64,000 nt of DNA from positions 60,110,876 to 60,174,875 of the forward strand of contig NC_068982.1 of assembly GCF_001194135.2 (NCBI RefSeq), read 5' to 3'. Position numbers and translations under genes: made by a program. Below, one piece after another: positions 1,092 through 62,295 of this stretch. Position 1 is the stretch's first letter. Every line of letters begins with the position of its first letter. Below the pieces are notes generated by a model. The model was not told where the DNA came from, made no database searches, and was given only the letters and a program-made list of their open reading frames with translations. Origin of the DNA: Octopus bimaculoides (lineage: Eukaryota).

Positions 1092-1266
1092 CAGCTTGTC
1101 CCTCTCTAACTTAGCAGTTTGATAAAAAGAAAAAAAAAGACCACTACAATAGGCACTAGACATAAAATAAGTACTAGGGTTGATTTGATCAACTAAGCCC
1201 CTCAATGCAGAGCCCAAAATGGCTGTAGTCCAATGACTGAAACCGGTAAAAGAATAAAAGATGAAT
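900..1266 (+). mobile_element. tRNA-derived SINE, family A (internal TA/TG microsatellite), decayed copy
   Basis: Head GTAGGTATGGCTGTGTTGTAAAGAGG...GGTTCAGTTC, internal (GT)n, tail GTCCAATGACTGAAACCGGTAAAAGAATAAAAG; matches copies at 18570 and 28258. Confidence 0.85.
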
Positions 1267-4035
1267 AAAAGAGTAACTACTTTGGCCATTCAAAAATGTG
1301 TAAAGTGACTGATTAAAATGGAAATGCTTCTACTAGTGATCAACCTAACCCTGTATGAGTTTTATAAATTAGCTTGTAAACAACTGCAAGATATTCCAGA
1401 GAGAAAAAAAAAAAATGTGTTTTAAAATTTTGCATCAAAATGTTATTAATGACTGGAAAATTTTGATAGTCTTTCGGCAAAAAAAGAAAAAAGAAAAATT
1501 ATTTGACAAAACTATGATGAGATCTACAGTGGAATGATTCCTGACTGCTCACAGTTTGGGGTTTTATTGTTTTTAATTACTTTTTATCACATATTTGAAT
1601 CTAAAGCTTGCTTTGTTTTGTCTTCATGGTAATAAGCAGCATCTAGGATATATGGGAAATAGGGAAATACATAAAAGAATATGGTGGAATAATTATGACA
1701 TGAAGCAGCCAGGAAAAATGGACATAACTGTATAGAAATTGATAGGAAGACGGAAGCATAACAGCACTTTAATGAAGCATTGAAGTCAGTGTACATAAAT
1801 CAAGAAATAATTATTTCATTGGCTAACATAAAGGTATATTACATTTGACAAAAACTAAGGAAGTGTTTAGGATAAATTAGATACCTATGAAGTATAAATA
1901 GGCACATACACAACACACATACACACAGAGTATATGCCAATGCAATGTATACACATAAGCATATCTCTATGTGTGGCTTTATAATCTACATTTTTATACA
2001 ACTATACACATATATAAAATAGAAGCCTTGATACATGCATTGTTTATGTTTTGTGTGCGTGTATGTGTGATCATGTGTGTAACTCTAACACTGCAAGAAT
2101 GTAAACATATAAAGTTAAAACAAAACGTAAAAATATATAAAAGAACTGATCCAAATTTTATGTTTTCAAGTTTGATATTATTGACCCAACACACAAGGAA
2201 ATAACATCATGCATCAGGGATATGAAATTTTACAAAATAAAAGAGCAAAACAAACTGAGTCAGCTGAAAAACTTTCTATACGACAAGTAGATTTCTCCTC
2301 TATGCTAAAGAACAGCTTCAAAACATTTTTCAGAGCTATTAAAAGAAATTGTTTCTAAAATAACAATAGCAAACACCAGTAGAAAAGTAAAAGAGATTAG
2401 CCTTATTTTGGAGAGAGGAATGATCACCCGAGCTGCAAGGACTTTGTAAAATGAAATGAGGTGGTACAACTTACTAAATGACGAACACAAAAGGAGCGCT
2501 TCACATATTCTATATGGCTAAAGGAATCACAGATATGAAAATAAGCATCGTCCATAGAGAAACGAAAAGCAGGAAGTTTGAAAGAATACAACAAACAGGA
2601 TTAGAAACTGGCCATACATCATTAATTTAAGAGGGAGAAAAAAGAAAGAGAATCCAAACATATAGACATATCAATCCATTTCCTGCAAATATATGCATAC
2701 ATACATATATATACATGGATACATACATATATTATAAATATATGCCTCTCAGAATAAACACACATTTTCACAAAGTTTACCTAAATGCATTTATGTGTAA
2801 AAGGATATATGTGTTTATGTACACACACATACTGCACATATTGGTACTCTCTTCAAATTGAAAAGATAGATACACATGCATGCACATGCACACACATTTC
2901 AGTGTATGCACACATGTATATTCTATAAAAGAATTATACTGTTGCTTATTGGTATTTTTATATCAAAGTTTTACAAATTTTGTTGTTATGGACATTTTGC
3001 TATTGTTTTACTTTTTAAACAAATATTTTCACTTATATCTTTTACCAATGTTTAATGTATTTTTTTTTTCTGTTCTTTTCTGTTATTTTATATTATTTTT
3101 TTTATTATCAAACTCCCTTTTCAATATTCTGCAAAGAAAATTACTGTTTAATTCCGTCTAAAGTAAAAATTGCAGTGGAATAATACAATTAATGTTCCGT
3201 TATTTTCTGCTCCTATCGTTATCGCCAAAGATAATGAAAACAAAAAAAAAAATAACAAAAGCAAAAAACAAAAAACCCGCAGAAAGACAAAACAATAAAA
3301 GTAGACAACTTTGCAGGAGTATTTCCTATTTAACATAAGAAATCAAAATTAAATTTCAACAAGCTTTATGACTTCCAAATACTTTGTGGAACAGTGCAGA
3401 AAGAAATGATCAACAAATATTTATTTCAAAGAATTAACATCACTTCTGCACAAGATTAAATTAGTTGTTGCTACAATTATTATTGTTGTAAAAAGAGAGA
3501 GAGAAGCTGAAGTTTTATGTATTTAGATGAATGAGGTGTGTGAATGTGTGTGTGTGAGGAGAAAGTTCTTTGGCTGTTGTTTTTCTACATCTTCCGCCAC
3601 GCTCGCATACCTTTTCATATAATCTTTTTATAGTATTGTCTATATATTTACATTGGTTAATTTTTTTTTTTTTTTTTTTGGCATTCTGAACAAATAAGCA
3701 AAACCTAAAACACACACAGACACACATTATTGTTCCATATCATATCTATCGATAATTCATTGATATATAGATAAAACTATTATTTGATATAGTTTAAAAG
3801 AACTATGATTTATATTTTAAGCTACAAGTAGAGTCAATTATCAATATGTAATCAGATTATTCTACTAATGTTTATAATTAACTCCCATTACTGTCACAAG
3901 TTAAATAGAAAGTCTATCCAAAACAGCATCACAATAAATTTGTTACTAAGAAAATATATATACATACATACACAAACCCATATATACAAGTATATATATA
4001 GTCATACAAACAGATATATAGATACACACATATAT

Positions 4036-4072
<37 letters not shown>

Positions 4073-4424
4073 TACATAAAGACATATTCACACACACAAA
4101 CACACATTATGTGTGTATGCAATTATGGGTACATGTCCGTTTATATTCAAACATGGGAAAACCTTCACTACACAGAAACTGTCTTGGAAGAGAAATTCTC
4201 CTTATAGACAATGTTGGTGCTGTGATCTGCACCAATATATTAGCTCATATAGAAACAATAAGTCATCTGGAAAATGTATACCAGATTAACAAATAGTTAG
4301 TCTATCAAGCAAAGTAAAAGTTGAACCAAATTCAAATCCCTTTCTCCAAGGGTCTGTCTGATAAAATTCATAAAATCTGCAACTCATATATCATCAAAAT
4401 GAGCTGATAGAGAAGCTTCTACAT

Positions 4425-4697
4425 CAGTGGTTCCCAACTGGGGTCAGTATGGCCCTTAGGGGTTATTATGGGCTTTGAGGCTCCATATAAGATTTGGTTG
4501 TTAAAATATTTTATGTATTGAAGTATAACCAATTTACTGCAGATAAATTTTGAGAATTTATTTTATACAATTCCAGATAATATCTAATTATAAAAGTATA
4601 AGATTTTTTTTAAACGTCAAATGGATCGGAGGGTCCAGTTGAGTAAAATAGGAATCAAAGAGTAAAAATAGGTAAAAAAAATGGTTGAGAATTAGTG
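4425..4697. mobile_element. hAT-type MITE
   Basis: TIRs CAGTGGTTCCCAAC ... GTTGAGAATTAGTG; 8-bp flanks TTCTACAT / TTCAACAT (7/8) fit a hAT TSD; related copy at 27215. Confidence 0.75.
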
Positions 4698-5315
4698 TTC
4701 AACATGACCGTTTTACTTGTTAGAAATAGAAGCTAAATATTCCTCAAATTCTTCCTGGCTGTTGCAAAGAAAAGGAAAGAATACTTTGAACAATATAGAT
4801 TTAAACATATAAAAAGACAGCATGGTCGTAGTTGGGTTGTCTTTGATATTTTATAATTATAGCACCAGCTTGGAACCCAGCACTCTCAGAACTGCGTTTA
4901 GAAGTAACAGTGCACTGCAAAATTCCTCATCACAATAACAAAACCTGCCCAAGAGTAGTTAATACTTAGTTATATTAATAACAGCCCATACACTTGCGGA
5001 AGAAAATCTTAAAAGGAGAAATTGGGAGTTCCTCTAAAGATAAGTATAAAGGAATATGAGAAAGTCTTAGAGGGAAGTGAAACATCTGAGAGAGGAATAG
5101 CTGAACTCATATGATAAGAAGGAAAAGCCTAAACCACTATGGAATCAGAATTTCCACAATTCATAAAGAACTATATTGGAAACTTTGAAAAAATTTTAGA
5201 ACATGGTACTTATAACACTTAGTGATAATCTAGTCAATTATCTTAGCATGGACCAAAACTCAGTATAGCAGCATTTAGTGAAAAATATAGTTAAATAACT
5301 TTAATCTTTTATCTT

Positions 5316-5725
5316 TTGCTTGTTTCAGTCACTAGACTGTGGTCAAGTTGGGACTCTGCCTTGAATTTTAGTCAAACAAATCAACCCCTGTACTTATTTG
5401 TTTTCAAGCCTGATACTTATTCTATCGGTCTCTTTTTGTCAAATGGCTAAGTTACAGAGACATAACCACACTAACATCAGTTGTCGAGCAGTGGTGGGGG
5501 ACAAACACAGACACAAAGAGACACACACACACATATGTGTATATATATGTATACATACACAAACAATGGGTTTCTTTCAGTTTCCATTTATCAAATCCAC
5601 TCAAAAGGCTTTTGTTGGCCCAATATTATAGAAGATACTTGTCAAAGGTGCCTCTCAGTAGGACTGGACCTGGAACCATGTAGTTGGGAAGCAAACTTCT
5701 TACCACAGAGCCACACCTCACCTAT
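5316..5725 (-). mobile_element. SINE family A
   Basis: Reverse complement of the 18570-19038 copy along its length, including the internal microsatellite. Confidence 0.85.
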
Positions 5726-8239: not shown

Positions 8240-8371
8240 AATGCTCAAAATACAAGACTAGAAAAACAGCCAATAACTGACGAAGAGTCGTTCTTTATGT
8301 TGTTTGCTTTGTTTGCCATTTGTGTCTTTTATTGTTTGAAAGAATAATTCATGTTTCATGTACTCGTGCTT

Positions 8372-8696
8372 NNNNNNNNNNNNNNNNNNNNNNNNNNNNN
8401 NNNNNNNNNNNNNNNNNNNNNNNNNNNNNNNNNNNNNNNNNNNNNNNNNNNNNNNNNNNNNNNNNNNNNNNNNNNNNNNNNNNNNNNNNNNNNNNNNNNN
8501 NNNNNNNNNNNNNNNNNNNNNNNNNNNNNNNNNNNNNNNNNNNNNNNNNNNNNNNNNNNNNNNNNNNNNNNNNNNNNNNNNNNNNNNNNNNNNNNNNNNN
8601 NNNNNNNNNNNNNNNNNNNNNNNNNNNNNNNNNNNNNNNNNNNNNNNNNNNNNNNNNNNNNNNNNNNNNNNNNNNNNNNNNNNNNNNNNNNNNNNN
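8372..8696. other. Assembly gap
   Basis: Run of N followed by (TA)n. Confidence 1.
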
Positions 8697-8738
<42 letters not shown>

Positions 8739-8895
8739 GGTGTCTTTCAGTTTCTATCTACCAAATCCACTCACAAGGCGTTCATCAAGCATAGGCTATA
8801 GTAGAAGACACATGCACAAAATTCCATGCAATAGGACTGAACCTAAAAGTGTATGGTTGGGAAGTAAACTTCTTACCACACAGCCATGCCTGTAC
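8697..8895 (-). mobile_element. SINE family A, 5' half running into the gap
   Basis: TCTTTCAGTTTCTATCTACCAAATCCACTCACAAGG...CTTCTTACCACACAGCCATGCC is the reverse complement of the family A head. Confidence 0.85.
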
Positions 8896-10131
8896 CTATC
8901 CATACTTAAACCTACAGACTGAATACATTTATTTCAAGAAATTTTGCGACAGTAGTGACATCATATCTTTGGGCATAACATCTAATTTGTACTGAGCAAC
9001 TAAACTGATAGACAATGCATTATATTTTCTTGGAATGAAATAGATAAAACAGTGGAAATGAAGATGAAGAAATAGTGTCACTGAAGCACAAAACACTTTA
9101 AAAAAAGACAAAATAAATTACTGAATATTTTTTGGCTATCTCTGCTTTGCCACATTGGAACATAACAAGAAATTCTGGGAATAATTTTAGAAGACAATCT
9201 AACCTACTGAGGGATGTTAAACTTAATCTTCAAATTTTGGCTGCCTTCTGTATATAAGACAGTTACTATTCTATAACTATTGTATATTATTTATTGTTTA
9301 TTGCCCAATATAGATTTTTAATAGTTTTAATGCAATAAAGAATAAATGAGACATTGACTATTACCGTAAACTGTTCTTTCATGGTAATTCATTCATGCTG
9401 GCAAAAAGATTTCAACAGATTATGCATAATATTAATATAATATATGGCAGTTTTTGTTGTTATTTTCATATTAATAGAGCTGATCAGGCTGGATAAGCCA
9501 ACACTTAAGTGACTGGAATGATGATGCTGATGATGACAATAGCAATGATGACGATGATGACAACACAAAATTGATGCTGATGCTGATGATGGTGGCGATG
9601 GTGGTGATGATGATGATGTTGATGACGAATTTCATCTACTGTAGGACAGTAGTCATGAAATATCCTGAAATTCAATTTGAAGCCAATATCCAGTTAAAAA
9701 GAATTCGAATTAAAATTTTTTTGTCTTTTTGTAAAATATCTTTGACCACAGTAAAGTAATTAGCATTTATAATTTGTATGTGAACATGAAAGTCTGTTGG
9801 CACCATTAAGTCTGATGGTTCTCCATTTGTTGATTTCTCATAATTTAAAGACCAATAACACTCGCATCATTCATTCCCCCCTTTCTTGATTCAAAATATT
9901 TACATTTCACCCAACAGTTCCACTGTGAAACAACTGGCGTATAAGTGACACAAGAAGAAAAAAGATAATTCCACTCTATTTTAATAAATGTATTTAATTC
10001 ATGTTCCTGCTGAAAAGAATTTTGCATGATTAATAGTTGAATGAAATAAATACAGTTTTAAATTACTCCATACAATTTTTCTAGAACTGTTTCCACTAAT
10101 AAAAGAAATATATCATTTGAAATATGCTTAG

Positions 10132-14083: not shown

Positions 14084-14356
14084 TGTGGGGATGAGCCGGA
14101 AGAAGAGAGTTATGACGTCAATGGTCAAGGGACTGACAGGAAGAGGAAGTGCAGGGGGCGACAGGACAGGGTCGTCCTCTTTTGGTCAGCTGAGGTATTG
14201 CAAATGGACGTCAGGGAATTCACTCTCGGGCTGGTGAGATAACAGCTGCTTATATTGGGTGATGGGTAGGGCAGGATCACCGGAGTGACTACTACAAGAC
14301 TGACGCAGACAAGAGAGGAAGGTAGGTGAACCTCTTTTCATCTCCCATGCACGACA
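14084..14356 (+). mobile_element. Ty3/Gypsy 5' LTR (family 1)
   Basis: TGTGGGG...ACGACA termini, directly upstream of gag. Confidence 0.75.
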
Positions 14357-14375
14357 AGTTATTTCAGCAATTTCG

Positions 14376-15195
14376 TTGTCCCCTTGTGTAGTAGCCTGGA
14401 TTCGAAAGGTCAAAGTTGTAGCCAGGCTACAAGGCATTGAAGTTGTAGTGAGCCTCATGGCCCTGTATTTGGAGGGGAGTGTGCTAGCACTGTACCTCGA
14501 AATGGATGAAGAACAACTGAGTGTGGTGAAGATTGAACAGCACTTGAGAGAGGCTTACACAGATGGAGAATACGCTGCTTTTGCTAAGCTGGCAACAATC
14601 AGATGGGGAGGGGAACAGATTGATGAATATGCTGTGGAGATATGGACGTTGGTTGTCTGCTCTTATCGGTGAGGGACTTCAGAAAGTAGCACGACTGGCT
14701 TTTGTGAATGGCTTTCCTGACAACATGTCAGTGCAACTACAACAGTTGCCAGGTGACAACAAAATGACGATGAGCAAGCTTATCATTCAAGCCCACGTGT
14801 TGACACAATACACCGGGCAGAATGCAGTGGTGATGGTGGCTGCAGAAGCCCACAAATCTGCATGACAGCCAGTGAAGGACGAAAAGAGGCCTGCTGTGGA
14901 ATGACAGTGGCCATTCATAGGCTGGTGTTTTAAGTGCCAAGGACAGCACATGACGAGGGACTGTGCAGAGCTCGGACCGGTTTGCTACCGGTACAAACAG
15001 ACTGGGAATATTGCCCAAATTGTAACCAGGGAAAAGGCCACGGGGAAGTTGTTGCCCCTCAAACTTCACCCACAAATGAGGCGTTGGTGAAGTTACTGCC
15101 CGTGGTTGAGGTCATGGTCAGGGGAAACACGTTCAAGGCCCTCATGGACATGGGCTGCATGACAACTCTCATGACTCTGAGGGTGACAAAGAAAT
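14376..15195 (+). pseudogene. gag: Gypsy gag plus start of aspartic protease, frameshifted
   Basis: VVAWIRKVKVVARLQ...LYLEG...ARLAFVNGFPD gag motifs; knuckle CFKCQGQHMTRDC; protease-like KALMDMGC (ALVDTGC type). Confidence 0.85.
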
Positions 15196-18435: not shown

Positions 18436-20064
18436 TAATAATCCTTTCTACTAAAAGCACAAGACCTGGAATTTTGGCTCAGAGGACTAGTCGATTACAT
18501 CAACACCAGTGTTTCACTGGTACTTAATTTATCAACCTCAGCAGAATTTGAACTCAGAACGTAAAGATACAGGAGTGGCTATGTGGTAAGTAGCTTGCTT
18601 ACCAGCCACATGGTTCCTGGTTCAGTCTCACTGCGTGGCACCTTGGGCAAGTGTCTTCTACTATAGCCTCGGGCCGACCAAAGCCTTGTGAGTGGATTTG
18701 GTAGACGGAAACTGAAAGAAGNNNNNNNNNNGTGTCTTCTACTATAGCCTCGGGCCGACCAAAGCCTTGTGAGTGGATTTGGTAGACGGAAACTGAAAGA
18801 AGCCCGTCGTATATATGTATAGATATATATATATATGTATGTGTGTTTGTCCCCTCCACCATCGCTTGACAACCGATGCTGCTGTGTTTACGACCCCGTA
18901 ACTTCGTGGTTCAACAAAAAGAGATCGATAGAATAAGTACTAGGCTTACAAAGAATAAGTCCTGGAGTCGATTAGCAGCTCGACTAAAGGCTGTGCTCCA
19001 GCATGACCACAGTCAAATGACTGAAACAAGTAAAAGAGAGGGAGTATAATAATCCTTTCTACTAAAGGCACAAGACCTGGAATTTTGGCTTAGAGGACTA
19101 GTCGATTTCATCGACCTCAGTGTTTCACTGGTACTTAATTTATCAACCTCAGCAGAATTTGAACTCAGAACGTAAAGACACACAAAATGTAGCTGAAGCA
19201 TTTTGCCCAGTGAGCAAATGATTTTGTCAGCTCGCCATCTTTTTAATGATGATGATAATCCTTTCGACTGGAAGCACAAGGCCTAAAATTTGTGGGGAGG
19301 GGACTAGTTGATTACATCAAGCCCAGTTTTTCACTGGTACTTAATTTATTGACCCCGAAAGGATGAAAGGCAAAGTCAACCTCAGCAGAATTTGAACTCA
19401 GAACATAGTGACAGGAGAAACACCGCTAAGCATTTCGTCCAGCGTGCTAACAATTCTGCCAGCATGCTAACGATTTGCCAGCTTGCCATCTTTTCAATGA
19501 TAATAATAATAATGGTCTCACATTTTGGCACAAGGCCAGCAATTTCAAGGGAGGGGGTAATCGTTTATATAGAACCCCAGTGCTTAACTGATACTTATTT
19601 TGTTGACCTCAAAAAGGATGAAAGAAAAAGTTGACCTCAGCAGAATTTGAACTCAGGACATGAAGACCAATGAAATGATGAAAAGCATTTTGTCCAGCAT
19701 GCTAAAGATTCTGAAATTCTGTGGGGAGGGGGCAAGTCTATTACATCAACTCCCAACACTTCAGTGGTACCTATTATATCAAGCTCGAACGAATGAAGAG
19801 TAAAGTTCATCTCAACAGAATTTGAGCATTGAATGTAAATGCCACTACTTGTTTTGTCTGGCATGCTAATCTGCCAGCTTGCTACCTTGATAACAGTTAG
19901 TAAATTACATTGACCCCCAGTACTTAACAGGTACCTTTTATAGACTCTGAAAGAGTTGAAATACAAAGTCAGCCTGAGCAGAATTTGTGTTCAAAATATA
20001 AAGTTTTGAAAGAAACGCCACTGAGCATTTTGTCTGGTGTACTTATGATTCTGCTTGCTGACAA

Positions 20065-21815: not shown

Positions 21816-22224
21816 GCGGTCGATTTGTTCGACTAAAGGCAGTGCTCCAGCATAGCCACAGTCAAATGACTGAAACAAGTAAGTAAAGAATAGATCTTGG
21901 GATATGATGGTGAACATGATTAATTTTGGCTCCTTAGGCCTCATTCCTAGTCAAATAAAGGGTACCATGTAATCTTTAGTTATCTGGTGCATTGGAAGAA
22001 TCATTAGAGCATTGGACAAACATTACTTCCACAATTTACTTTGTATAATACTTTATGTTCTGAGTTCAAATCTTACTATGATGAACTTTGTCTTTCAAGC
22101 CTCCTAGGGTTAGTAAAATGAAATAGCAGCCAAATACAGGAGTCAATAGAATTTCAAACTGTTAAACTAAGGTTTCCAACATTCTAATTCCTAGGTATAT
22201 TGTTGCTGTAAATACATTGTCTTG

Positions 22225-22380
22225 TGCCCGACTCCAGTACACAACTGGTACTTAATTTATCGACCCTGAAAGGATGAAAGGCAAAGCTGACCTTGGCAGA
22301 ATTTGAACTCAGAACATAAAGACAGATGAAATACCGCTAAGCATTTCACCCGGAATGCTAACGTTTCTGCCAGCTCGCAG
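22225..22380 (-). mobile_element. SINE family B
   Basis: CTGGTACTTAATTTATCGACCCTGAAAGGATGAAAGGCAAAG...TTCTGCCAGCTCGC. Confidence 0.9.
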
Positions 22381-31859: not shown

Positions 31860-32072
31860 ATTGGTTTCAAATTTTTGCACAAGGCCAGCAATTTTAGGGG
31901 ATGGGGCAAGCCAATTACATCGACCCTAATGCTCAGCTGGTAATTATTTTATTGGCCTCCGAAAGGATGAAAGGCAAATTTAGCCTCGGAGGAATTTGAA
32001 CTCAGAATGTAAAGACGGACGAAATATCACTAATCATTTTGTCCGGTGTGCTAACGATTCTGTCGGTCCGTC
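31860..32072 (-). mobile_element. SINE family B
   Basis: GCACAAGGCCAGCAATTTT tail, CGAAAGGATGAAAGGCAAA core, GAATTTGAACTCAGAAT. Confidence 0.9.
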
Positions 32073-33009: not shown

Positions 33010-33440
33010 TGTAGATTTACATTGAAAAACTGGTGTGAGAATGTTCTAATCCATCAGTCGTGGCAGTCTCGTACTTCCGATCTTTATTCTGTTTCACTTC
33101 CTTCCGCAGTATATACATTTCCTAGTCCAAGTTAGCTTGTTCTTAAGATTGAATAAAACCTTCGGTCGCTGCATCTTTGATATCTTCGTACAACACACTT
33201 TTATTCAGTCTGAAGAGATGTAATGGATCCGAAAATCTTCCGGAAAAAACTTGTTGATGAGCCGTCTGAAGAAGATTACAATTATTAGTGAAAAATGTTA
33301 CAAGTGTACATCGAGCAAACAAAAATATTAACCGAATAGCATTTAGCTGTACTTCTAGTTGATTGCGGCGCTAAAGCTTATCAAGTTGTCAAAGAGCGTA
33401 CCTCATTCCAGGAAGCCCTCAATTCTCTAAGGAACATTAA
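33010..33440 (+). mobile_element. gag: Ty3/Gypsy family 2: 186-bp LTR (33010-33195) plus gag N-terminus
   Basis: TGTAG...CAACA; MDPKIFRKKLVDEPSEEDYNY...AYQVVKERTSFQEAL; homologous to minus-strand copy at 38060-38447. Confidence 0.8.
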
Positions 33441-36930: not shown

Positions 36931-36959
36931 AGGGAAAGGCTTGCAGAAAGTTTATTTGT

Positions 36960-38447
36960 TACCCACATAAAGGTCCTATCTGATCCGTTATCCAGTAGAT
37001 ATCGTGTGTCATGTGATCGTTTACTTTCACTTTAATGAGTTTTGTTCGTTCCTCGACGGCCACCAGCTGTAAAAGTGAAGCACAATTATCGTCAGTTGAA
37101 TTACTTTCGGGATCAGCGTTACCTTCTGTTCTGATCATGGCCACCTTCAGCTTGAAAGAAGTTGGCTTCTTTGTCATGCAAATGGTTGCCCAGTGTCCTT
37201 TTCGACGGCAGTTATTACAGGAAGAAGTTTTGGTTGGACATGTTGCTTTTGGGTGAATAGGTTCACCACACCAATAGCAGGATTGTTTTCCTGAAGCTAC
37301 TAGAACTGGAAGGCATGAAGGATTCATTGTAGTGACGCGAAATTATGACCGCCATTAAGGAAGTGCAATCTACTCATGCGCAAGGGACTTGCCTTCCCGG
37401 AAGCCCCTCGAGTGCGCATGCGTAGTAAACCAGTACTTAAAGCGTTTCGCGCGTTTTCTAAGTCTCTTTAGCACGATGCTTTCCATGTGACAACACTCGC
37501 TCCGCTGGGATGCCTCAACAAAGCCCTTAATCTCCAGATGCTGATTACAAGTTAACCAGCGGCGACCAGGCTGAATGATACCGGTTTTGTAAAGCCTAGC
37601 ATCACCAAATAAAATTTATTTTATTATGCTGTTAATTGTTCACACCTGCGTTTGTTCTACAGTTTCCTAATATATTTTTGTTGAAAGGTGATAGAGAGAG
37701 ACTAATGTCTCAATGTTGCTATCAACCTTTTACACATTCTTGTCAAGTTCCTTACATCCTCGTTGGCCAGTTCAATGCTTAAAGCAATTTTTTCCAATGA
37801 TTCTCGGTCATCTTCGGTAGACACATTGATGACTAGTCGATCAATTTATTCCTGAAATGAAAACATTGCGAATTAGTAAACCATGGCGTTGTTTTGCACG
37901 CAAAGACTGTATATGACACTTCCTTGCAAGTTTTTTCAGGTCTAATAGTAAGCCTTCTATCGATCGGTCTTCTGCTTGATTGTGGTTACGTAGTCTGTGT
38001 TGAACCATGACAGAACACGATGCTTTAATAAACTTCTTATCGAGATTGGCGTCTTCCCGGAACGAGGTACACTCCTCGACAACTTGACTAGCTGAGAACT
38101 ACAAGGACAGCTAAATGCGATTCGGTGGGTATTTTTGTTTGCTCGATGTACACGTGTAACTTATTTCATAAATAATTGTAATCTTCTTCAGACGGCTCGT
38201 CAAGAAGTCTTTTTCGGAAGATTTCCAGTTTCATTACCGTTCTTAAGAGTGAATAAAAGCATGTTGCATGTGGACACGGAATGTGCGACGACCAAAGGTT
38301 TTATTCAATCTTAAAAACAAGCCGACTTACATTCGTTAGAAAATTTATATACTGCGGAAGAAAGTGAAAAAGAATGAAGACCGGAAGTACAAAATCGCAG
38401 TGACTGACGGATTAGAAACGTGGTTAGAACACTGAAAGCTTTCTACA
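36960..38447 (-). mobile_element. gag: Ty3/Gypsy family 2: LTR (38262-38447), gag with two CCHC knuckles, protease start; interrupted by solo LTR
   Basis: HRLRNHNQAEDRSIEGLLLDLKKLARKC, LIRNVFISGI, CYWCGEPIHPKATC, CNNCRRKGHWATIC, IKVKVNDH. Confidence 0.85.
37328..37661 (+). mobile_element. Solo LTR nested in gag, 334 bp
   Basis: TGTAG...CTACA termini, AATAAA near 37606; unrelated to host LTR; no TSD visible. Confidence 0.7.
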
Positions 38448-45240: not shown

Positions 45241-47354
45241 TAGTAATGCTGACACAAATTCACAATAGTGCTGACACTAAATCTGCAGAAGTCAAAATAC
45301 TAATAAAAGTCATATATCCTTGTTTATTGACACTGGAATGTTGAAAGCTGAAGTCAATCCTAACAGGATTTGACTTTTGAGCATAAAGGATGAAACTTAA
45401 TTTGAGCATAAAGGATGAAATTAAGTTCCCTGACTGTTAGACCACAATTTAAAACCTTTAGCATTCAGATTAATTAGTCAAATGTAATGCTTAATGCTTT
45501 AGAATTAATCCCATTGTTTTGAATTAATCTTCCATTATCTTGTATTTTCAAGATATCTATAAAGTGATTGTTTATTTTAAGAAGGACATTGTAGGGTAGG
45601 CGAGAGAGGCTAGATCTAGCTGATTTGAACATTAAACAGGTAGAATACTTGAGCTGGAAATGGCCAGTTTAGAGGCTAAATCATTATTAGCATTCATACA
45701 AAGTCTGTATCTCTTTGCTGGAGTTTATCAAATGTTATTGCATTTCACTTATTTCAGTTTTTGCAAAATTAAAAAAAAAACTTTAAGTTTCAGTACTTCC
45801 ACTTCTTTAGAATCATGTTATATATTTTCATTAAAAGAAAAAACATTTAGTAGGATTTATATATTTGATCCCATAATGATGTGATTTTATGTAGTTATGT
45901 AGATTGTAGAAAGGCTTTCTGATGTATTTTATAGTCCTCAGATACAGCCATTTAATAACCTAAAATAGCCATAGAATTTGAACCTGTTTCATTTGACTTT
46001 GTGCATTTGAATTATAATAAAGTGCTATTAAAATATTTAATGGAAAGTAAAAATGAGTGAATTTAATATTAATCAGATGAATATATTGGTTCATCTGTTT
46101 AAATATGTAGACTCTTCTTTTGTTTGAGCATGTGGACTTGTGCTGGATATTAACCCATTACCTACCACTGATCTCATATTAGATCACTTAAAAATTACAA
46201 ATTTCGTAATTATCTGTGAATATTTACACATGTCTAACCTTTTTGCTATATCTACTAGGTATATTTCTCTGATATTCAAATGAGGTTTGCTAATTTTTCA
46301 CCCAATATCTCGCTTATTTCTATTTAAAATGTTATTTTGAAATGTTATTTTGATCATTCCAGCGTGTTTCTAAGGCTGTTTTATGCAGGAAATCAAAGTT
46401 TCATAAAAAAAATTCCAGTTAATAGAATTATGGGAGGTAATGGGTTAATAGTGCATATTTGTATCTTATTCAATAAGCATAAATTAAGGTGTGTATATTG
46501 TTTTCAAGAGCTGGTAAAATTGTAAGCAAATTAAAGCCTAAATTCACTGCTTTCTTCTTCAAACTCTCGGTGTACTTTACATATCTAAAGCTAAAGGGGT
46601 ATTTAGTGGTGTTTAAGATATGAAATATGTATTTGCTCCTGATACATACTTTTAAGTTCTTAAGAAGGAATTAAATGATTTAATTCAACAATTAATCTTT
46701 TTATTTCTTACCAAATTAAAGCACAACTGTACATAGTAAATGAATTAAAGACAAAGTTTTTCATTTATGCTTAATGAATAATTTAGTGACACATGTATGT
46801 GATACATGTATGTATGAATATACATGTGTGTATGTGTGTGTGTGCATATATGTGTCTATGTATGTATATATGTGTGTATGTATGTATATGTGTATGTATA
46901 TATGTGTGTATCTATATGTGTATGTATATATGTGTATGTATATATGTGTATGTGCGTATATATATGTGTGTGTATGTGTATTTATATATGTGTGTATATA
47001 TATATTTATATATATATATATGAGAAAGAGAGAGAGAGAGAGAGCAGGTGGAGGGAAAGAAAAGAATGCAGACATCTAAATTAAAATTTTGGATCAAGTA
47101 AATTTAATTCAGCCAGTAAGATGCCAAGTTGTAATGAAATAGTGTGAAAACACAGAGAGGGTTTCAATGACATAGAAATTCTACTCTGCTGATGAAACCA
47201 GAAAAATAAATTGTCTGAAAGCAAAAAAAAACTCCAAAATTTGTGAAAATGCTTTAATAAGAATTATTATTTTTCTTCTTCAATACTGCTGTTTGTGTAG
47301 TGTAAATACATATGTGTGTGAGTGTATGGAAATGTATACAGTTATATATATATA

Positions 47355-47692
47355 NNNNNNNNNNNNNNNNNNNNNNNNNNNNNNNNNNNNNNNNNNNNNN
47401 NNNNNNNNNNNNNNNNNNNNNNNNNNNNNNNNNNNNNNNNNNNNNNNNNNNNNNNNNNNNNNNNNNNNNNNNNNNNNNNNNNNNNNNNNNNNNNNNNNNN
47501 NNNNNNNNNNNNNNNNNNNNNNNNNNNNNNNNNNNNNNNNNNNNNNNNNNNNNNNNNNNNNNNNNNNNNNNNNNNNNNNNNNNNNNNNNNNNNNNNNNNN
47601 NNNNNNNNNNNNNNNNNNNNNNNNNNNNNNNNNNNNNNNNNNNNNNNNNNNNNNNNNNNNNNNNNNNNNNNNNNNNNNNNNNNNNNNNNNNN
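47355..47692. other. Assembly gap
   Basis: N-run within (TA)n. Confidence 1.
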
Positions 47693-48439
47693 ATATATAT
47701 ATACACACATAAGCATACACACACACACACACACACACACAATGTATATAATGTTTATGTTTATGTAATATATATGAATATCAATAAGAAAATTATCTTA
47801 TCACATGAGACATGGTTCACCATGTTTTATTTTATAGCCATAAGAAACTGAAGAAGATAGACAATTTTTTTTAAAGGATACTATTTTAGTAATTTAGATT
47901 AGTCAACTTCAGGCTACCACAGCATTACTCGATATGAAATCTTTAGCAAAATAACAAACTGATAAGATTAAATTTACTTCACTTTATTCGAGTTGATAAA
48001 CATAGAGCATGAATTCAGCATGTCAGTTTGTCAAAAAATTACAATAATTCATGGTTAAATACTTCTACAGAAAAATGTTCAGCTTTCCTAAAATTTAACA
48101 GCTATACAACATTGGTGTAAAGTATTCTAAGCCATAGATCACTTGTAATCTGTCTCTCATCTAGCTAGTTACTTCCATATTCTTCACTCTCTGTCTAGTT
48201 ACATGTCTCATACATACACATGCAATCTTATACATCAACTAGACCACACAATTTCTCTGTTTTAAAAATTTAATATGAAGAGAAGGGACAGTGCTCATAG
48301 CCTTTTGCAGGCCCTCCTAGGCTTTACGAGATCCATGAGGCTAATGTTCTTCTGTCATTAAGGTATTCATGAACCACAAAGGAGTTCCAGAGAGTTGCAG
48401 TTCTAAAAGAAGGATTGGCGACAAAAAAGGGGATGATTT

Positions 48440-49299: not shown

Positions 49300-49968
49300 A
49301 TGATTTCAAATTTTGATACAAGGCCAGCAATTTTGGGGGAGCACATAAGTCAATTGCATCAACCCCAATACTCAACTGGTACTTATTTCATCAACCCAGA
49401 AAGGATGAAAGGCAAAGTTGACCTCAGTGGAATTTGAACACAGAATGTAAAGACAAACGAAATACCACTAAGTATTTTGTGTTAACAATTCTTCCAGCTT
49501 GCTGTCTTAGAGGAACTCCAATGGCAGGGGCTTCAAATTTTGGCACAACTACAACAGTTTTAAGGGAAGGGGAACAATCAATTACATTGATCCCAATCTT
49601 CGATCAGTGCTAATTTTATCAACCCTGAAAGGATGAATGGCAAAGTTGACCTCAACAGAATTTGAACTCAGACCATAAAGAGTCAAAAGAAATACTATTA
49701 AGCATTTTCTCCAACATGCTAATGATTCTGCCAGCTCACTGCCATGACAATAACAATTATTTCAAATCTTGACAAAAGGCAAACGGTTTTATGAGGATTG
49801 GGTTAGGCAATTACAACAATTCCAATGTTCAACTGGCACTTTGATTATCGACCCCAAAATTATGAAATACAAAGTTGACCTTGCTGGGATTTGAACTCAG
49901 AATGTAAAGAGACAGAAGAAATGTCATGAGGCATTTTTAATCCAATGCTCTAACGATTCCGACAACCC
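49300..49968 (-). mobile_element. Three head-to-tail family B SINEs
   Basis: AAAGTTGACCT repeated near 49413, 49642, 49871 with the same unit order. Confidence 0.9.
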
Positions 49969-54260: not shown

Positions 54261-55020
54261 CCCGGTGTTGCCTGGGTTACTGCTGTCCTTATTCAGATTA
54301 GTAAACAAGAAATATAAAGATATATTTTATTCTCATGATTATATCTAAATATCTATATTTTATTTTAAAAAATATCCAAATTGTAATGATAATAGAATTT
54401 AGAACTGAAAGTCTGTCAATCTTGAAGCACCTCAGGTTAAAGAATATTCGTTGTGTAATATTTTGTTAGTGTCCAAATGAATAAATTGTTGCAACTTTGA
54501 ACCCATGAGCAGCCAACATAGAGTTGGTCATGAGAGAAGCATGTAGTAGAGAGATGAAGTCCAAATACCTTGAGGGAATGACTCTGAGATTAATTAATTG
54601 AAATACCAATACTTAGTTTGACTGGAAACTGAAGCCTCTTAAATTCAAATGGAACATCTGTAGGTATGAGAGAAAATTTTGGAATAATGACATTTTCTTC
54701 TTTGTGACTACTTGTTATGACTGTTGCATGTAGGACATGGAGCTTCATGTAACAATTAAGTAAGTTCCATTACACAGGTGAGATAGGTCAAGATTCCTAA
54801 GCAACAATAGGAGCATCCAGCTTTAGTGTCAAGTTATGTGGTGACAATGCAGCAGGTTTAAACGTGTTCAGAAATTCAACAACCTGATCTTGATCGACTG
54901 TCGTGAGAATTGGTGGAAAAGTCATTTCTGATGTATCTGTTAACTTTTGAAGAAGTTTATGATTGAGTTTATCAACCATTTCATTAAGTGGAGCCAGTAC
55001 AGCTCTTTCACATAACCAGT
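54221..55020 (-). mobile_element. Helitron 3' remnant with PIF1 helicase C-terminus
   Basis: WLCERAVLAPLNE, VEFLNT, LRNLDLSHLCNGT, IPTDVPFEFKRLQFPVKL, CFSHDQLYVGCS; 3' hairpin CCCAGG-CAAC-ACCGGG at 54261-54276. Confidence 0.92.
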
Positions 55021-55996
55021 TTACCTGTGTCTAATTGGCAATCACACATACACATTCACATACACTGATGCACACATACACTCTTACATACACTCACATA
55101 CGTATACTAAGACAGATACATACAGACATACATTTACGTAACAAATGCGCAAACGCACACACACTCAGAGACACATACTCATATACAAAATGTGTCATCT
55201 TTTGTAATGAACATGCAAACACACACTCACAGTCACATACACACTCATATACAAAATGTGTTGTCATCATTGTAATCATGGTACAAAATGTCCTTTACTC
55301 TATAATTGACTATAGAAAGATTATTTTAGATAAAATGTTATACTGTTTTAACCCAAATAAAAATTACATGTTAACACTTGCAGGATTTAATACTGTTACC
55401 TTGTAAAATTTGACTTTATTTGGTGCAGCCATTTGAGAATGCATAGGGAACAGACAGACAGACAAACAAAGAATTTTATATATATATAGATATATATATA
55501 TCCTTATACATGAATTTATATACATATACTCATTCATATATTTACATACATACATACATATATATATACATATACATACATACACATATATATATATAAA
55601 GATGTATATCTTAATATATAAATCTGAAGTTGTGTGTCTGTGTGAAGCTTTTTTGAATGTTTATAGAAATCCACATTTTCCACTTTTTCGTAAAAATTCC
55701 GTTTACTTTGTGTGATTTAAGGGAGATTTGGCTGTTGTTTCTAGCAACTTTTATATTTCATCCCTTCTACCTGGAACGTCATTCTTACACACACGCTCAA
55801 CATAAAAATATAGAGAGTAAGAGTAAAAGAGGGTGAGGGAGAGAGAGAGAAAGTGATACATACAACGTCATAGATTAAACTTTCATCTCAGTATTCTTTA
55901 CCTATTTTTCATAACATAGATACGTAAAAACACACACAACCACACATACATGACCTGTGACAACAACATACACATTGCTCTCAATCTCTATTCATT

Positions 55997-56337
55997 NNNN
56001 NNNNNNNNNNNNNNNNNNNNNNNNNNNNNNNNNNNNNNNNNNNNNNNNNNNNNNNNNNNNNNNNNNNNNNNNNNNNNNNNNNNNNNNNNNNNNNNNNNNN
56101 NNNNNNNNNNNNNNNNNNNNNNNNNNNNNNNNNNNNNNNNNNNNNNNNNNNNNNNNNNNNNNNNNNNNNNNNNNNNNNNNNNNNNNNNNNNNNNNNNNNN
56201 NNNNNNNNNNNNNNNNNNNNNNNNNNNNNNNNNNNNNNNNNNNNNNNNNNNNNNNNNNNNNNNNNNNNNNNNNNNNNNNNNNNNNNNNNNNNNNNNNNNN
56301 NNNNNNNNNNNNNNNNNNNNNNNNNNNNNNNNNNNNN
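55997..56337. other. Assembly gap
   Basis: N-run. Confidence 1.
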
Positions 56338-56645
56338 GAAGGAAACAACTGCACGTTATTTTTGAGAAGTGTTCCCCACTCGGCGGTGTTTCGGAGCAAG
56401 TCGTCCATATTTGTTTCATTTTTCTCTATTATGTGCTTATGTGCATCCTTAGATTTCTAATGAAGTAATAGGCAGTGAAGAGAAGCAGTCATAAGAAAAC
56501 TTTTAACTACCCCTATTCCTTTCTCTCCCCCTCTCTACCTCTTCCTCTCTCGCTCTCTCAAAAGCATACGCGTGCAAGTACACAATCATTCAGTAAAATA
56601 TAACTCATGTTCGTCAATGTTTTGTAAATTTACCACGATTTTCAC

Positions 56646-58158: not shown

Positions 58159-58643
58159 TATGAGATCTGATCGAAAAGTATCAAGACTGTTGCTATGGTA
58201 ACAGGGTTAACGTAAACAGAGTGAAGCTGCTTGGAACACAGTGACCTTGAACTCTGTCACTCATGCATGCTAAGTTATAATGTTCTCACTCACTTCTGTC
58301 ATTTAGAGCAGGGCTTGGAAGTAAAGTGAGTAGAGTGTGGTTGTCTCACCACACCACAGAGGTTCTATCAGTGACCATGGCAGAGAAAATTCAGCAGAGA
58401 ATCTGCATCAATAAGGTTTCTTGATGTTGATGAAATCCAAGAGAATGCAAAAGGGCAGCTGCTTGCTATCCCAAAAAATGAGTTTCAGGAATGCATCCAT
58501 CAATGGAAAGGATGCAGGATAAAGTGTGTGGCTTCAGAAGGGGACTACTTCAAAGGAGATTGAATGCTGAATCGATATGTGTTGTATTTTTTTTTTTTTT
58601 TTGTAATAATACCAACCCCAATACTTTTTGATTAGTCCCCGTA
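58159..58643 (+). mobile_element. Internally deleted mariner
   Basis: TIRs TATGAGATCTGATCGAAAAGTATC / AATACTTTTTGATTAGTCCCCGTA; MAEKIQQRICI fused to RFLDVDEIQEN...KCVASEGDYFKGD*. Confidence 0.88.
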
Positions 58644-58757
58644 TGTTGCATTTTAATTTCGACTTGATCTCTGAGCAGTAATGGCTGGGTAGTTAAGAGG
58701 TTTACTCTGTGTATGGTTCCAGATTCAATATCTCTGTGTGACACCTTATATGTATAT

Positions 58758-58909
58758 NNNNNNNNNNNNNNNNNNNNNNNNNNNNNNNNNNNNNNNNNNN
58801 NNNNNNNNNNNNNNNNNNNNNNNNNNNNNNNNNNNNNNNNNNNNNNNNNNNNNNNNNNNNNNNNNNNNNNNNNNNNNNNNNNNNNNNNNNNNNNNNNNNN
58901 NNNNNNNNN
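58758..58909. other. Assembly gap next to a SINE A head (58660-58757, minus)
   Basis: N-run. Confidence 1.
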
Positions 58910-58950
<41 letters not shown>

Positions 58951-59029
58951 TACGTGTGTGTGTGTGTGTATGTGTGTGTAGATATATAGATAGATAGATT
59001 TTTTTTTTAGTTTGTTATGATATGTGGTT

Positions 59030-59831
59030 TACGCCTGAAGAATAGTATAGCAGGATCAGTTGGGCACCATTTGTGAGAAAAACACCACCATGACACAATT
59101 CACTCTGCCAGAAATTTGGAAACAACATGCTGTACTGCTTGGCTATGTGCCAGAAGCTCCAGCATGAACATTTCAGAGTGTTTGGGTGTCAATCTGAAGA
59201 CATGTACCGAGAGTGATGAAAATCAAACATCCAGTCACGATCATGCTGCTTGGAGTGATCACTAGTGATAGCAGTGTTATGTCTCCCTTCATCTTCCTCC
59301 ACGGCCTCAGACTCAACATAGAGACCTACATCAAGTGCCTGGAGAAGTCATTACTGCCCTGAGTCAAGAGGAAGGCTGCTGGAAGACCCTATGTCTGGCA
59401 ACAGGACTCTGAATCATGCCACACAAGCAGGAGAACCCAGTCATGACTGTCAGACAATTTATGCAACTACATCACTCCTAACATCTGGCCACCTAACTCC
59501 CCAGACTGCAACCCCTTAATTATTATGTGAGGGGCACAGTCTAGCAAGAGACCAACATAACTCCTTGTAACACCAAAGATGAAATGAAGGTAAGGATTAT
59601 GGCAGCATTGACCAACTTAAACAAGGAGACCAACCAGAAGAGTTGCAGGAGATTCCGAAGTCATTTGGAAGCTGTGGTTGAAGCCAATGGCGATTTTATT
59701 GAATAAATTTACTCCTTAGTATTTCAAGATATTTTTATGTGGTTTTGGTAAATATATCTGTTAAAATGAGATGTCAGTGTTATTTTCATGTTTGCATAAT
59801 TTAGATGGCAATATATCCACTGCACCCTGTA
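59030..59831 (+). mobile_element. DD37D (maT-type) transposase relic with right TIR
   Basis: YVWQQDSESCHTSRRTQ...WPPNSPDCNP: 37 residues between the second and third D positions; AVVEANGDFIE* end; CACTGCACCCTGTA terminus. Confidence 0.88.
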
Positions 59832-62069: not shown

Positions 62070-62245
62070 AAAAAACAAAATTCTGATGGGAGGGAAATAG
62101 TCGACTACACTAATCTCAGTACTCAACTGGTACCTATTTTATCGACCTCAAAAGGATGAAAGGCAAAATCAACCTCAGCAGAATCTGAACTCAGAATGTA
62201 AAGACAGACGAAGTACTGCTAAGTATTTTGCCCAGCATGCTAATG
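62070..62245 (-). mobile_element. SINE family B
   Basis: CTGGTACCTATTTTATCGACCTCAAAAGGATGAAAGGC...TTCTGCCAGCTC. Confidence 0.88.
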
Positions 62246-62295
62246 ATTCTGCCAGCTCTCCAACTTAATAATGATGAGGATGGAGATGATAAAAG

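Follow-up and report, generated by a model that had tools for sequence, protein, structure and literature searches.

A covarying duplex at the primer-binding position points to probable self-priming in a chromodomain-less clade of animal Ty3/Gypsy retrotransposons

The DNA examined here, called the window throughout, is a stretch of 64,000 nucleotides from Octopus bimaculoides (NC_068982.1, positions 60,110,876 to 60,174,875 of the forward strand; assembly GCF_001194135.2). It carries two partial copies, A and B, of a long terminal repeat (LTR) retrotransposon family. We estimate at roughly 70% the probability that this family belongs to an animal Ty3/Gypsy clade that lacks a chromodomain and that primes its own reverse transcription as Tf1 does, through a primer-binding site (PBS) that is complementary to a stretch of 12-20 nt in the element's own LTR that ends in the polyadenylation (poly(A)) signal. 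Comparative analysis shows a predicted duplex, conserved and covarying, that links this LTR segment to the exact position of the PBS in elements that have no tRNA-type site. An original prediction made from copy A had proposed self-priming with a duplex longer than that of Tf1. Beyond it, we find that the feature is clade-wide, that the poly(A) signal lies inside the proposed primer and that the window holds a second, inverted copy.

Copy A occupies positions 33010-33435 of the plus strand and has the following features.

33010..33195, plus strand: LTR-like unit of 186 nt, TGTAG...CAACA, present as a 5' LTR only; copy B has the same length and termini.
33110..33115, plus strand: TATA box, TATATA, 29 nt upstream of the first base of arm 1.
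33139..33158, plus strand: arm 1, GTTCTTAAGATTGAATAAAA, the proposed transcript 5' end and self-primer, which covaries with arm 2 across families.
33152..33157, plus strand: poly(A) hexamer AATAAA, within the 3' end of arm 1.
33159..33198, plus strand: loop of 40 nt, comprising the remainder of the repeat and unique 5' regions (R/U5), the LTR terminus CAACA and the 3-nt spacer CAC.
33199..33216, plus strand: arm 2, TTTTATTCAGTCTGAAGA, at the expected PBS position and complementary to arm 1.
33223..33435, plus strand: gag residues 1-71 (MDPKIFRKKLVDEPSEEDYNY...) with in-frame stops, the element being truncated beyond; matched by tblastn with the related proteins P0006, P0153 and P0154 (E 1e-12 to 1e-15).

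The LTR begins with TGTAG at 33010 and terminates with CAACA at 33191-33195; its end was deduced from the ..AACA ending and the spacer of 1-4 nt seen in relatives, including a sea anemone locus (L013) that has a target-site duplication. The coordinates that had been proposed for the LTR end, TATATA, the arms and gag match base for base. The gag ATG at 33223 lies 28 nt past the LTR end, and TGG is absent from the interval between the two, so the claim that copy A has no TGG-type PBS stands and extends to the relatives. The complementarity between LTR and post-LTR sequence was likewise recovered as an inverted repeat of 18-20 nt. An inverted-repeat search of copy A returned arms of 18 nt that are 89% complementary and 40 nt apart, and the duplex in this decayed copy comprises 15 Watson-Crick pairs, 2 G-U pairs and 1 mismatch.

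Such a repeat might be a palindrome that arose by chance in A/T-rich DNA and has no function. The arms are indeed A/T-rich, and the copy A hairpin folds no better than shuffled sequences (z = -1.1). However, among 2000 shuffles of the 250-nt copy A region just 1 contained an 18-nt inverted repeat with no more than 2 mismatches, and repeats of this kind are rare in 250-nt bins of the window, microsatellites aside. A further argument against chance is that the hairpin occurs in both window copies and in 10 other families, where it covaries, as described below.

Copy B was found when the copy A region was compared with the window by BLAST: positions 33044-33423 match 38417-38045 in inverted orientation, with 78% identity over 380 nt. 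This copy extends from 38447 to 36941 on the minus strand.

38262..38447, minus strand: LTR-like unit of 186 nt.
38299..38318, minus strand: copy B arm 1, GTTTTTAAGATTGAATAAAA, which includes AATAAA at 38305-38300.
38239..38258, minus strand: copy B arm 2, TTTTATTCACTCTTAAGAAC, 3 nt past the LTR end.
36941..38234, minus strand: decayed gag corresponding to residues 1 to about 313 of relatives, with two CCHC knuckles and, after a frameshift, the protease start YLLDNGSD.

The equivalent of the TATA box in copy B, TATATAAA, is 33 nt upstream of arm 1. The copy B duplex is 20 nt long with 1 mismatch and 1 G-U pair, its arms are spaced 40 nt apart as in copy A, and its hairpin folds far better than shuffled sequences (z = -4.1). 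The hairpin of copy A carries more substitutions than that of copy B. Just beyond the protease motif, copy B enters a microsatellite, and a Pfam search of its X-masked frames returned a weak zinc knuckle only.

Relatives of the family were sought through its gag protein. A word-index protein search with the 122-aa gag open reading frame returned no matches. An exhaustive search with the 127-aa gag stretch of copy B identified P0004 (50% identity) and P0006, a single-frame protein of 1206 aa whose N-terminus (MDPKIFKTVL..NPSEEEYTYW) matches the gag start in the window. When P0006 was used as the query in a second search, about 97 relatives were recovered, most of them on contigs 3.6-4.2 kb long. 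An intact relative measures about 4 kb and has a single gag-pol reading frame and LTRs of about 150-190 nt, and Pfam places the domains of P0006, P0154, P0164 and P0203 in the order gag, protease (PR), reverse transcriptase (RT), RNase H and integrase. The best solved-structure match of the relatives in the PDB is Ty3 Gag-Pol (E 1.4e-59). The chromodomain PF00385 is absent from four full-length relatives at E values up to 0.1 and from the precomputed domains of relatives in both subclades formed by the gag N-termini; the window family falls in the 'MDxKIFKK' subclade. Named hosts of the relatives are sea anemone, coral, aphid, leafhopper and rays, of which the sea anemone was checked at the DNA level and the others are known by protein name. 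A profile search with the gag-PR alignment found nothing in metagenome or viral contigs.

The DNA of the relatives was examined at 13 loci, at contig ends rather than as whole elements. Two loci on cut contigs, L006 (arm 2 only) and L009 (arm 1 only), were left out of the counts. Ten relatives from different families and both window copies share a common layout. The LTRs of the relatives measure 147-192 nt and start with TGT.. or TGA.. directly after a purine tract, and purine-rich tracts such as GGGAGAGAC or GGAGAAGAC precede the 3' LTR. Arm 1 lies within the LTR, is 12-20 nt long and ends in a poly(A) hexamer. This hexamer is present in all 12 elements as AATAAA(A), apart from ATTAAA in L010 and L012 and GTTAAA in L011. 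The loop of 38-64 nt contains the LTR terminus ..CA, and a spacer of 1-4 nt, usually a single A, separates the LTR end from arm 2. The gag ATG falls within -3 to +35 nt of the arm 2 end. Two elements, L004 and L012, have an arm 2 that shares bases with the gag start codon (..TCTAGATGG and ..AATAATGG), and therefore the helix would need to be opened for translation to start in them.

The layout is best defined in L013, from Actinostola sp. (GCA_033675265.1). Its two 187-nt LTRs are 100% identical, have TG..CA ends and are flanked by a 5-bp target duplication, ATAAG; its frame of 1189 codons is intact, and arm 2 begins 1 nt past the LTR. The target duplication, the identical LTRs and the intact frame together fix the LTR end. 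By these sequence features the copy looks recently active, and thus the layout appears to be that of a working element.

The arms were then compared column by column. We built gap-free constructs of 54 nt for 12 sequences, using the end of the arm 1 hexamer and the last TTTA before the ATG as anchors. Standard pairs occupy 79% of cells compared with 61.8% in shuffles, and the covariation score is 0.488 compared with 0.183; for both measures, none of 500 shuffles reached the observed value. Pairing drops to 33-49% when one partner is slid by 1-3 columns. Columns 12-22 are paired in 12/12 sequences except for one mismatch and one G-U pair in column 14, and column 11 is paired in 10/12. Outside the invariant TAAA core, 7 of the 8 pairs occur as 2-4 pair types. 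For example, columns 12/43 form AU in five sequences, GC in four and UA in three, whereas columns 17/38 vary in one sequence only. Even the hexamer participates, as the change from AATAAA to ATTAAA is mirrored in arm 2 by a change from TTTATT to TTTAAT.

Complementarity is present in 11 families whose proteins are 40-60% identical, and it has been kept by changes on both arms; what had been seen in one copy is thus a property of many. As a negative control, a DNA pattern representing the invariant core was scanned against metagenome and prokaryote genome collections. The scan gave 239 chance matches and no clade member. In these matches about 2.4 of the next 8 positions pair, and only 2 matches reach at least 6, whereas seven clade members with the invariant core have 5-8 of the next 8 positions paired (counted by hand). 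Chance matches to the core thus lack the distal pairing, and the covariation and the control scan together contradict a functionless palindrome, to which we give almost no chance of being the right explanation.

The duplexes called in the 10 relatives, which are intact-frame elements, contain 139 Watson-Crick pairs in all and are free of internal G-U pairs and mismatches. In every relative, the minimum-energy fold is closed by the helix that the two arms form, with z between -2.1 and -7.4. A search of Rfam gave no family at the hairpin. The helix is lengthened in L002, L004, L008, L010 and L012 by a stem of 3-7 bp past the unpaired LTR terminus; there, GCxx after arm 1 pairs with bases 7-11 nt upstream of arm 2, leaving the LTR terminus bulged. 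Elsewhere a local hairpin is formed, without a consensus.

The covariation also bears on the choice of primer. A tRNA or tRNA fragment might prime by pairing with arm 2 or nearby sequence, in which case the match to arm 1 would be incidental. Most LTR retrotransposons do use tRNAs, and some use internal tRNA fragments (PMC6317226); the window, for its part, contains no tRNA gene. Yet TGG follows the LTR in none of the elements, and the differences in arm 2 between families are mirrored in arm 1. Since a site for a conserved tRNA would stay constant, these mirrored changes speak against tRNA priming, which we regard as very improbable. The original prediction had named a match between the PBS and a tRNA 3' end as one outcome that would count against it; the site begins with TTT(T)A in both window copies, in the 10 relatives with a complete piece and also in L006, and this is unlike a tRNA 3'-end site. 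Its interpretation, self-priming with a longer duplex than in Tf1, is supported by the comparative evidence; priming itself is inferred.

How such elements might prime is proposed here by analogy with Tf1, both for the priming itself and for the RNase H cut (PMC6317226, PMC5006619). Transcription would start at or near the first base of arm 1, and the 5' end of the genomic RNA would fold back on arm 2, 1-4 nt beyond the LTR. RNase H would then cleave immediately past AAUAAA(A), where the duplex has its inner end, and the freed 3'-OH would prime minus-strand strong-stop DNA over 40-60 nt of U5. From the cut to the poly(A) site a short stretch would be left, which might act as R in the first strand transfer. 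Finally, plus-strand synthesis would copy the RNA primer, such that arm 2 would be rewritten from arm 1 in each cycle.

Several features are compatible with this scheme. The TATA spacing of 29 nt in copy A and 33 nt in copy B fits a start at the first paired base, as judged from sequence, and a TATA box lies 38 nt upstream of arm 1 in L002. Because the poly(A) signal is at the 3' end of arm 1, the cut would occur upstream of the poly(A) site and would leave a short R for strand transfer. Furthermore, the run of 139 pairs without a G-U or mismatch fits an arm 2 that is recopied from its primer.

The position of the poly(A) signal also raises the main rival explanation, namely that the hairpin only regulates polyadenylation: AAUAAA would be masked at the 5' end and the signal in the 3' LTR would be used, with reverse transcription primed in some other way. 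A precedent for masking exists in the HIV-1 poly(A) hairpin, in which AAUAAA is held in a stem that lowers its use at the 5' end. The HIV-1 hairpin is wholly within R, is present at both RNA ends and belongs to a virus primed by tRNA-Lys3, whereas arm 2 of the elements described here is outside the LTR, at the 5' end only and at the primer site. That arm 1 ends in the hexamer in every one of the 12 elements, with the hexamer fully paired, and that arm 2 exists at the 5' end alone would both be expected if polyadenylation were the purpose. However, this explanation leaves the element without a primer site, even though arm 2 occupies the exact PBS place at its short distance from the ATG and no TGG is found. 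Nor would a purely structural helix account for the lack of G-U pairs in 139 bp as well as recopying does. In addition, a poly(A) signal located 10-20 nt from the cap is usually weak. We therefore consider regulation of polyadenylation alone to be unlikely. Masking of the AAUAAA in the 5' LTR is nevertheless a likely second role of the duplex, and since no arm 2 follows the 3' LTR, the poly(A) signal there would stay free. Masking is most likely an added function rather than the sole one.

Another possibility is that the helix belongs to the 5' leader as a structure for packaging, dimerisation or translation control and plays no part in priming. A conserved hairpin beside the gag ATG would suit such a role, and initiation could be affected where arm 2 overlaps the ATG, as in L004 and L012. 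Against this, the distance to the ATG varies across the range given above, and a leader structure would leave unexplained the missing primer site, the fixed place after the LTR end and the all-Watson-Crick pairing. We judge this quite improbable.

Other observations weigh against self-priming as proposed. As noted, the hairpin of copy A does not fold better than shuffles. Several relatives have no clear TATA box, and L011 and L013, which belong to subclade 2, have in the LTR, about 30 nt upstream of arm 1, the motif GCCGCCATGTT, which we take to be YY1- or initiator-like; if transcription started there, the primer could carry a 5' overhang. After the cut, an effective R of no more than about 10-25 nt would remain. 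The helices, rich in A-U pairs, are weak, with the whole hairpin at -10 to -28 kcal/mol, and sequences were trimmed at the arms before folding, which favours the helix. RNAalifold predicted no pairs on an unguided MAFFT alignment of the full hairpins. In that alignment, AAA and AAAA hexamer ends are out of register and the loops cannot be aligned, and for this reason the anchored alignment was used for the pair counts. Lastly, most relatives come from metagenome or read-archive contigs, and four LTR-plus-PBS pieces were joined over contig ends by overlaps of 30-75 nt.

Tf1 is an established case of self-priming with this geometry, and the Tf1/sushi, Tcn1 and TAR groups are predicted cases (PMC6317226, PMC5006619). 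Tf1/Tf2, the Tf1/sushi elements (Maggy, Skippy, Cft-1 and sushi-ichi) and the Tcn1 clade of mosses resemble the elements described here in that they have no tRNA site, carry, close to or at the 5' end of the transcript, an LTR segment complementary to post-LTR sequence, and have been proposed to prime by folding back (PMC6317226, PMC6934838, PMC5006619). The duplex of Tf1 is 11 nt compared with 12-20 nt here, where the primer moreover ends in the poly(A) signal. Tf1 also requires a second stem beside the primer duplex (U5-IR), of which the helix extension described above is reminiscent, but that extension is not conserved in all families. Tf1/sushi elements have a chromodomain at the integrase C-terminus and ours have none. 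Further differences from that group are a length of about 4 kb with one reading frame, LTRs of about 150-190 nt and named hosts that are animals. The elements would appear to work like Tf1, but membership in Tf1/sushi is not supported, given that the chromodomain is absent.

Outside the chromoviruses, self-priming has likewise been predicted from sequence alone for the TAR lineage of plant Ty1/copia elements (Houba and Osr-1) (PMC6317226); these differ from the present elements in belonging to the copia superfamily, with integrase before RT, and in their plant hosts. The conserved hairpin site of GalEa copia elements and the inverted repeats of bivalve TRIM elements are similar in that a recognisable tRNA site is missing and short inverted repeats occur near the 5' LTR, in some cases in molluscs (PMC6934838). 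In those elements, both arms (9-10 bp, 12-41 bp apart) are in the internal domain, no LTR partner has been described and no mechanism has been assigned (PMC6934838). Steamer and Steamer-like elements of bivalves resemble ours as small Gypsy elements with a single frame, molluscan hosts and LTRs of about 180 bp, but they are about 4.8 kb long and a primer site of the tRNA-Asn type is reported for the Steamer-like MchSLE1 (PMC11046912). Elements of the Mag C-clade (SURL-like) have an LTR of about 174 nt with ends TGTNATRT...AYANAACA (PMC3601003). The LTRs described here, at 147-192 nt, have starts that include TGTTGTAT, TGTGATAG and TGTAGATT and ends that include ..ACAACA, ..AGAACA and ..CGACA, a likeness to the described C-clade LTR that is not specific. 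For Gypsy elements, the literature that we searched reports self-priming in Tf1/sushi and Tcn1 only, and for copia elements in TAR, although subscription journals or repeat-library notes may hold other cases. The papers on mollusc and annelid LTR elements in that literature report no self-priming site, and its surveys of LTR elements in molluscs, annelids and other animals leave primer sites unanalysed.

A wider proposal, to which we would give slightly less than an even chance, is that a widespread animal Ty3/Gypsy clade of about 4-kb elements without a chromodomain self-primes with a primer defined by the poly(A) signal. A single duplex of 12-20 bp would act as primer, as template for rewriting the PBS and as mask of the 5' poly(A) signal, and its outer edge would mark the start of transcription. 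Self-priming would then be recurrent or ancient among animal Gypsy elements rather than a peculiarity of Tf1/sushi. If this is true for the whole animal clade, such elements will be overlooked or wrongly labelled by annotation tools that require a tRNA site, and the link between poly(A) signal and primer would be a simple rule for finding the elements. It would also provide a testable model for how an LTR of 150-190 nt holds a promoter, a primer, a poly(A) signal and R, and would bear on whether hairpin priming preceded tRNA priming (PMC3601003).

The copies in the window are themselves dead 5' fragments that consist of an LTR and part of gag, and as such they likely have no effect on the host. 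BLAST detected no direct second copy of the copy A LTR in the window, and neither a 3' LTR nor an RT was found there for either copy. Pfam matched no domain, whether RT, integrase or any other, in stop-free stretches of at least 70 aa between positions of about 13,500 and 55,000, low-complexity stretches excluded, and tblastn of full-length relatives against the window gave gag matches only. Because both copies are without a 3' LTR or RT, their 'LTR' and 'Gypsy' labels rest on relatives outside the window.

Copies A and B face each other at a distance of about 3.5 kb, both without their 3' parts, and the DNA between them contains other repeats and microsatellites. The BLAST homology between the copies begins about 30 nt inside the LTR, with none found upstream, a pattern that suggests the copies were inserted separately and did not arise by inverted duplication. 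We considered whether the inverted pair might be a DIRS-like element or a DNA transposon with long terminal inverted repeats. This idea was rejected, since both members of the pair are an LTR with the start of a Gypsy gag behind it, face each other and are truncated.

Head-to-tail arrays in which adjacent units share a single LTR occur at two of the related loci, L002 (112-7666) and L011 (about 1200-5500). The L002 array has a period of 3886 nt, and only 217 nt separate the pol stop from the next gag ATG. The elements may truly lie in tandem, or the repeated LTR may have affected the assembly.

Elsewhere in the window, three stop-free stretches at 14304-15194 on the plus strand appear by eye to be the gag and protease start of another retroelement (...YLEGSVLALYLEMDEEQL...; ...CPNCNQGKGH...FKALMDMGC...); they have no Pfam match at E <= 0.01. 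At 54800-55030 on the minus strand, a stop-free stretch of 77 aa (TQVNWLCERAVLAPLNEMVDKLN...) resembles, by eye, a fragment of a Pif1/Helitron-type helicase and has no Pfam match. A dispersed repeat of about 180-230 nt is present in many copies of 61-80% identity, some of them in tandem, including those at 19285-19463, 22196-22374, 31889-32067, 49327-49505 and 62078-62256. Long microsatellite-like arrays at 8340-8920, 47176-47850, 55920-56470 and 58550-59030 yield false long open reading frames in several frames, and the array at 8340-8770 has a period of 8 nt.
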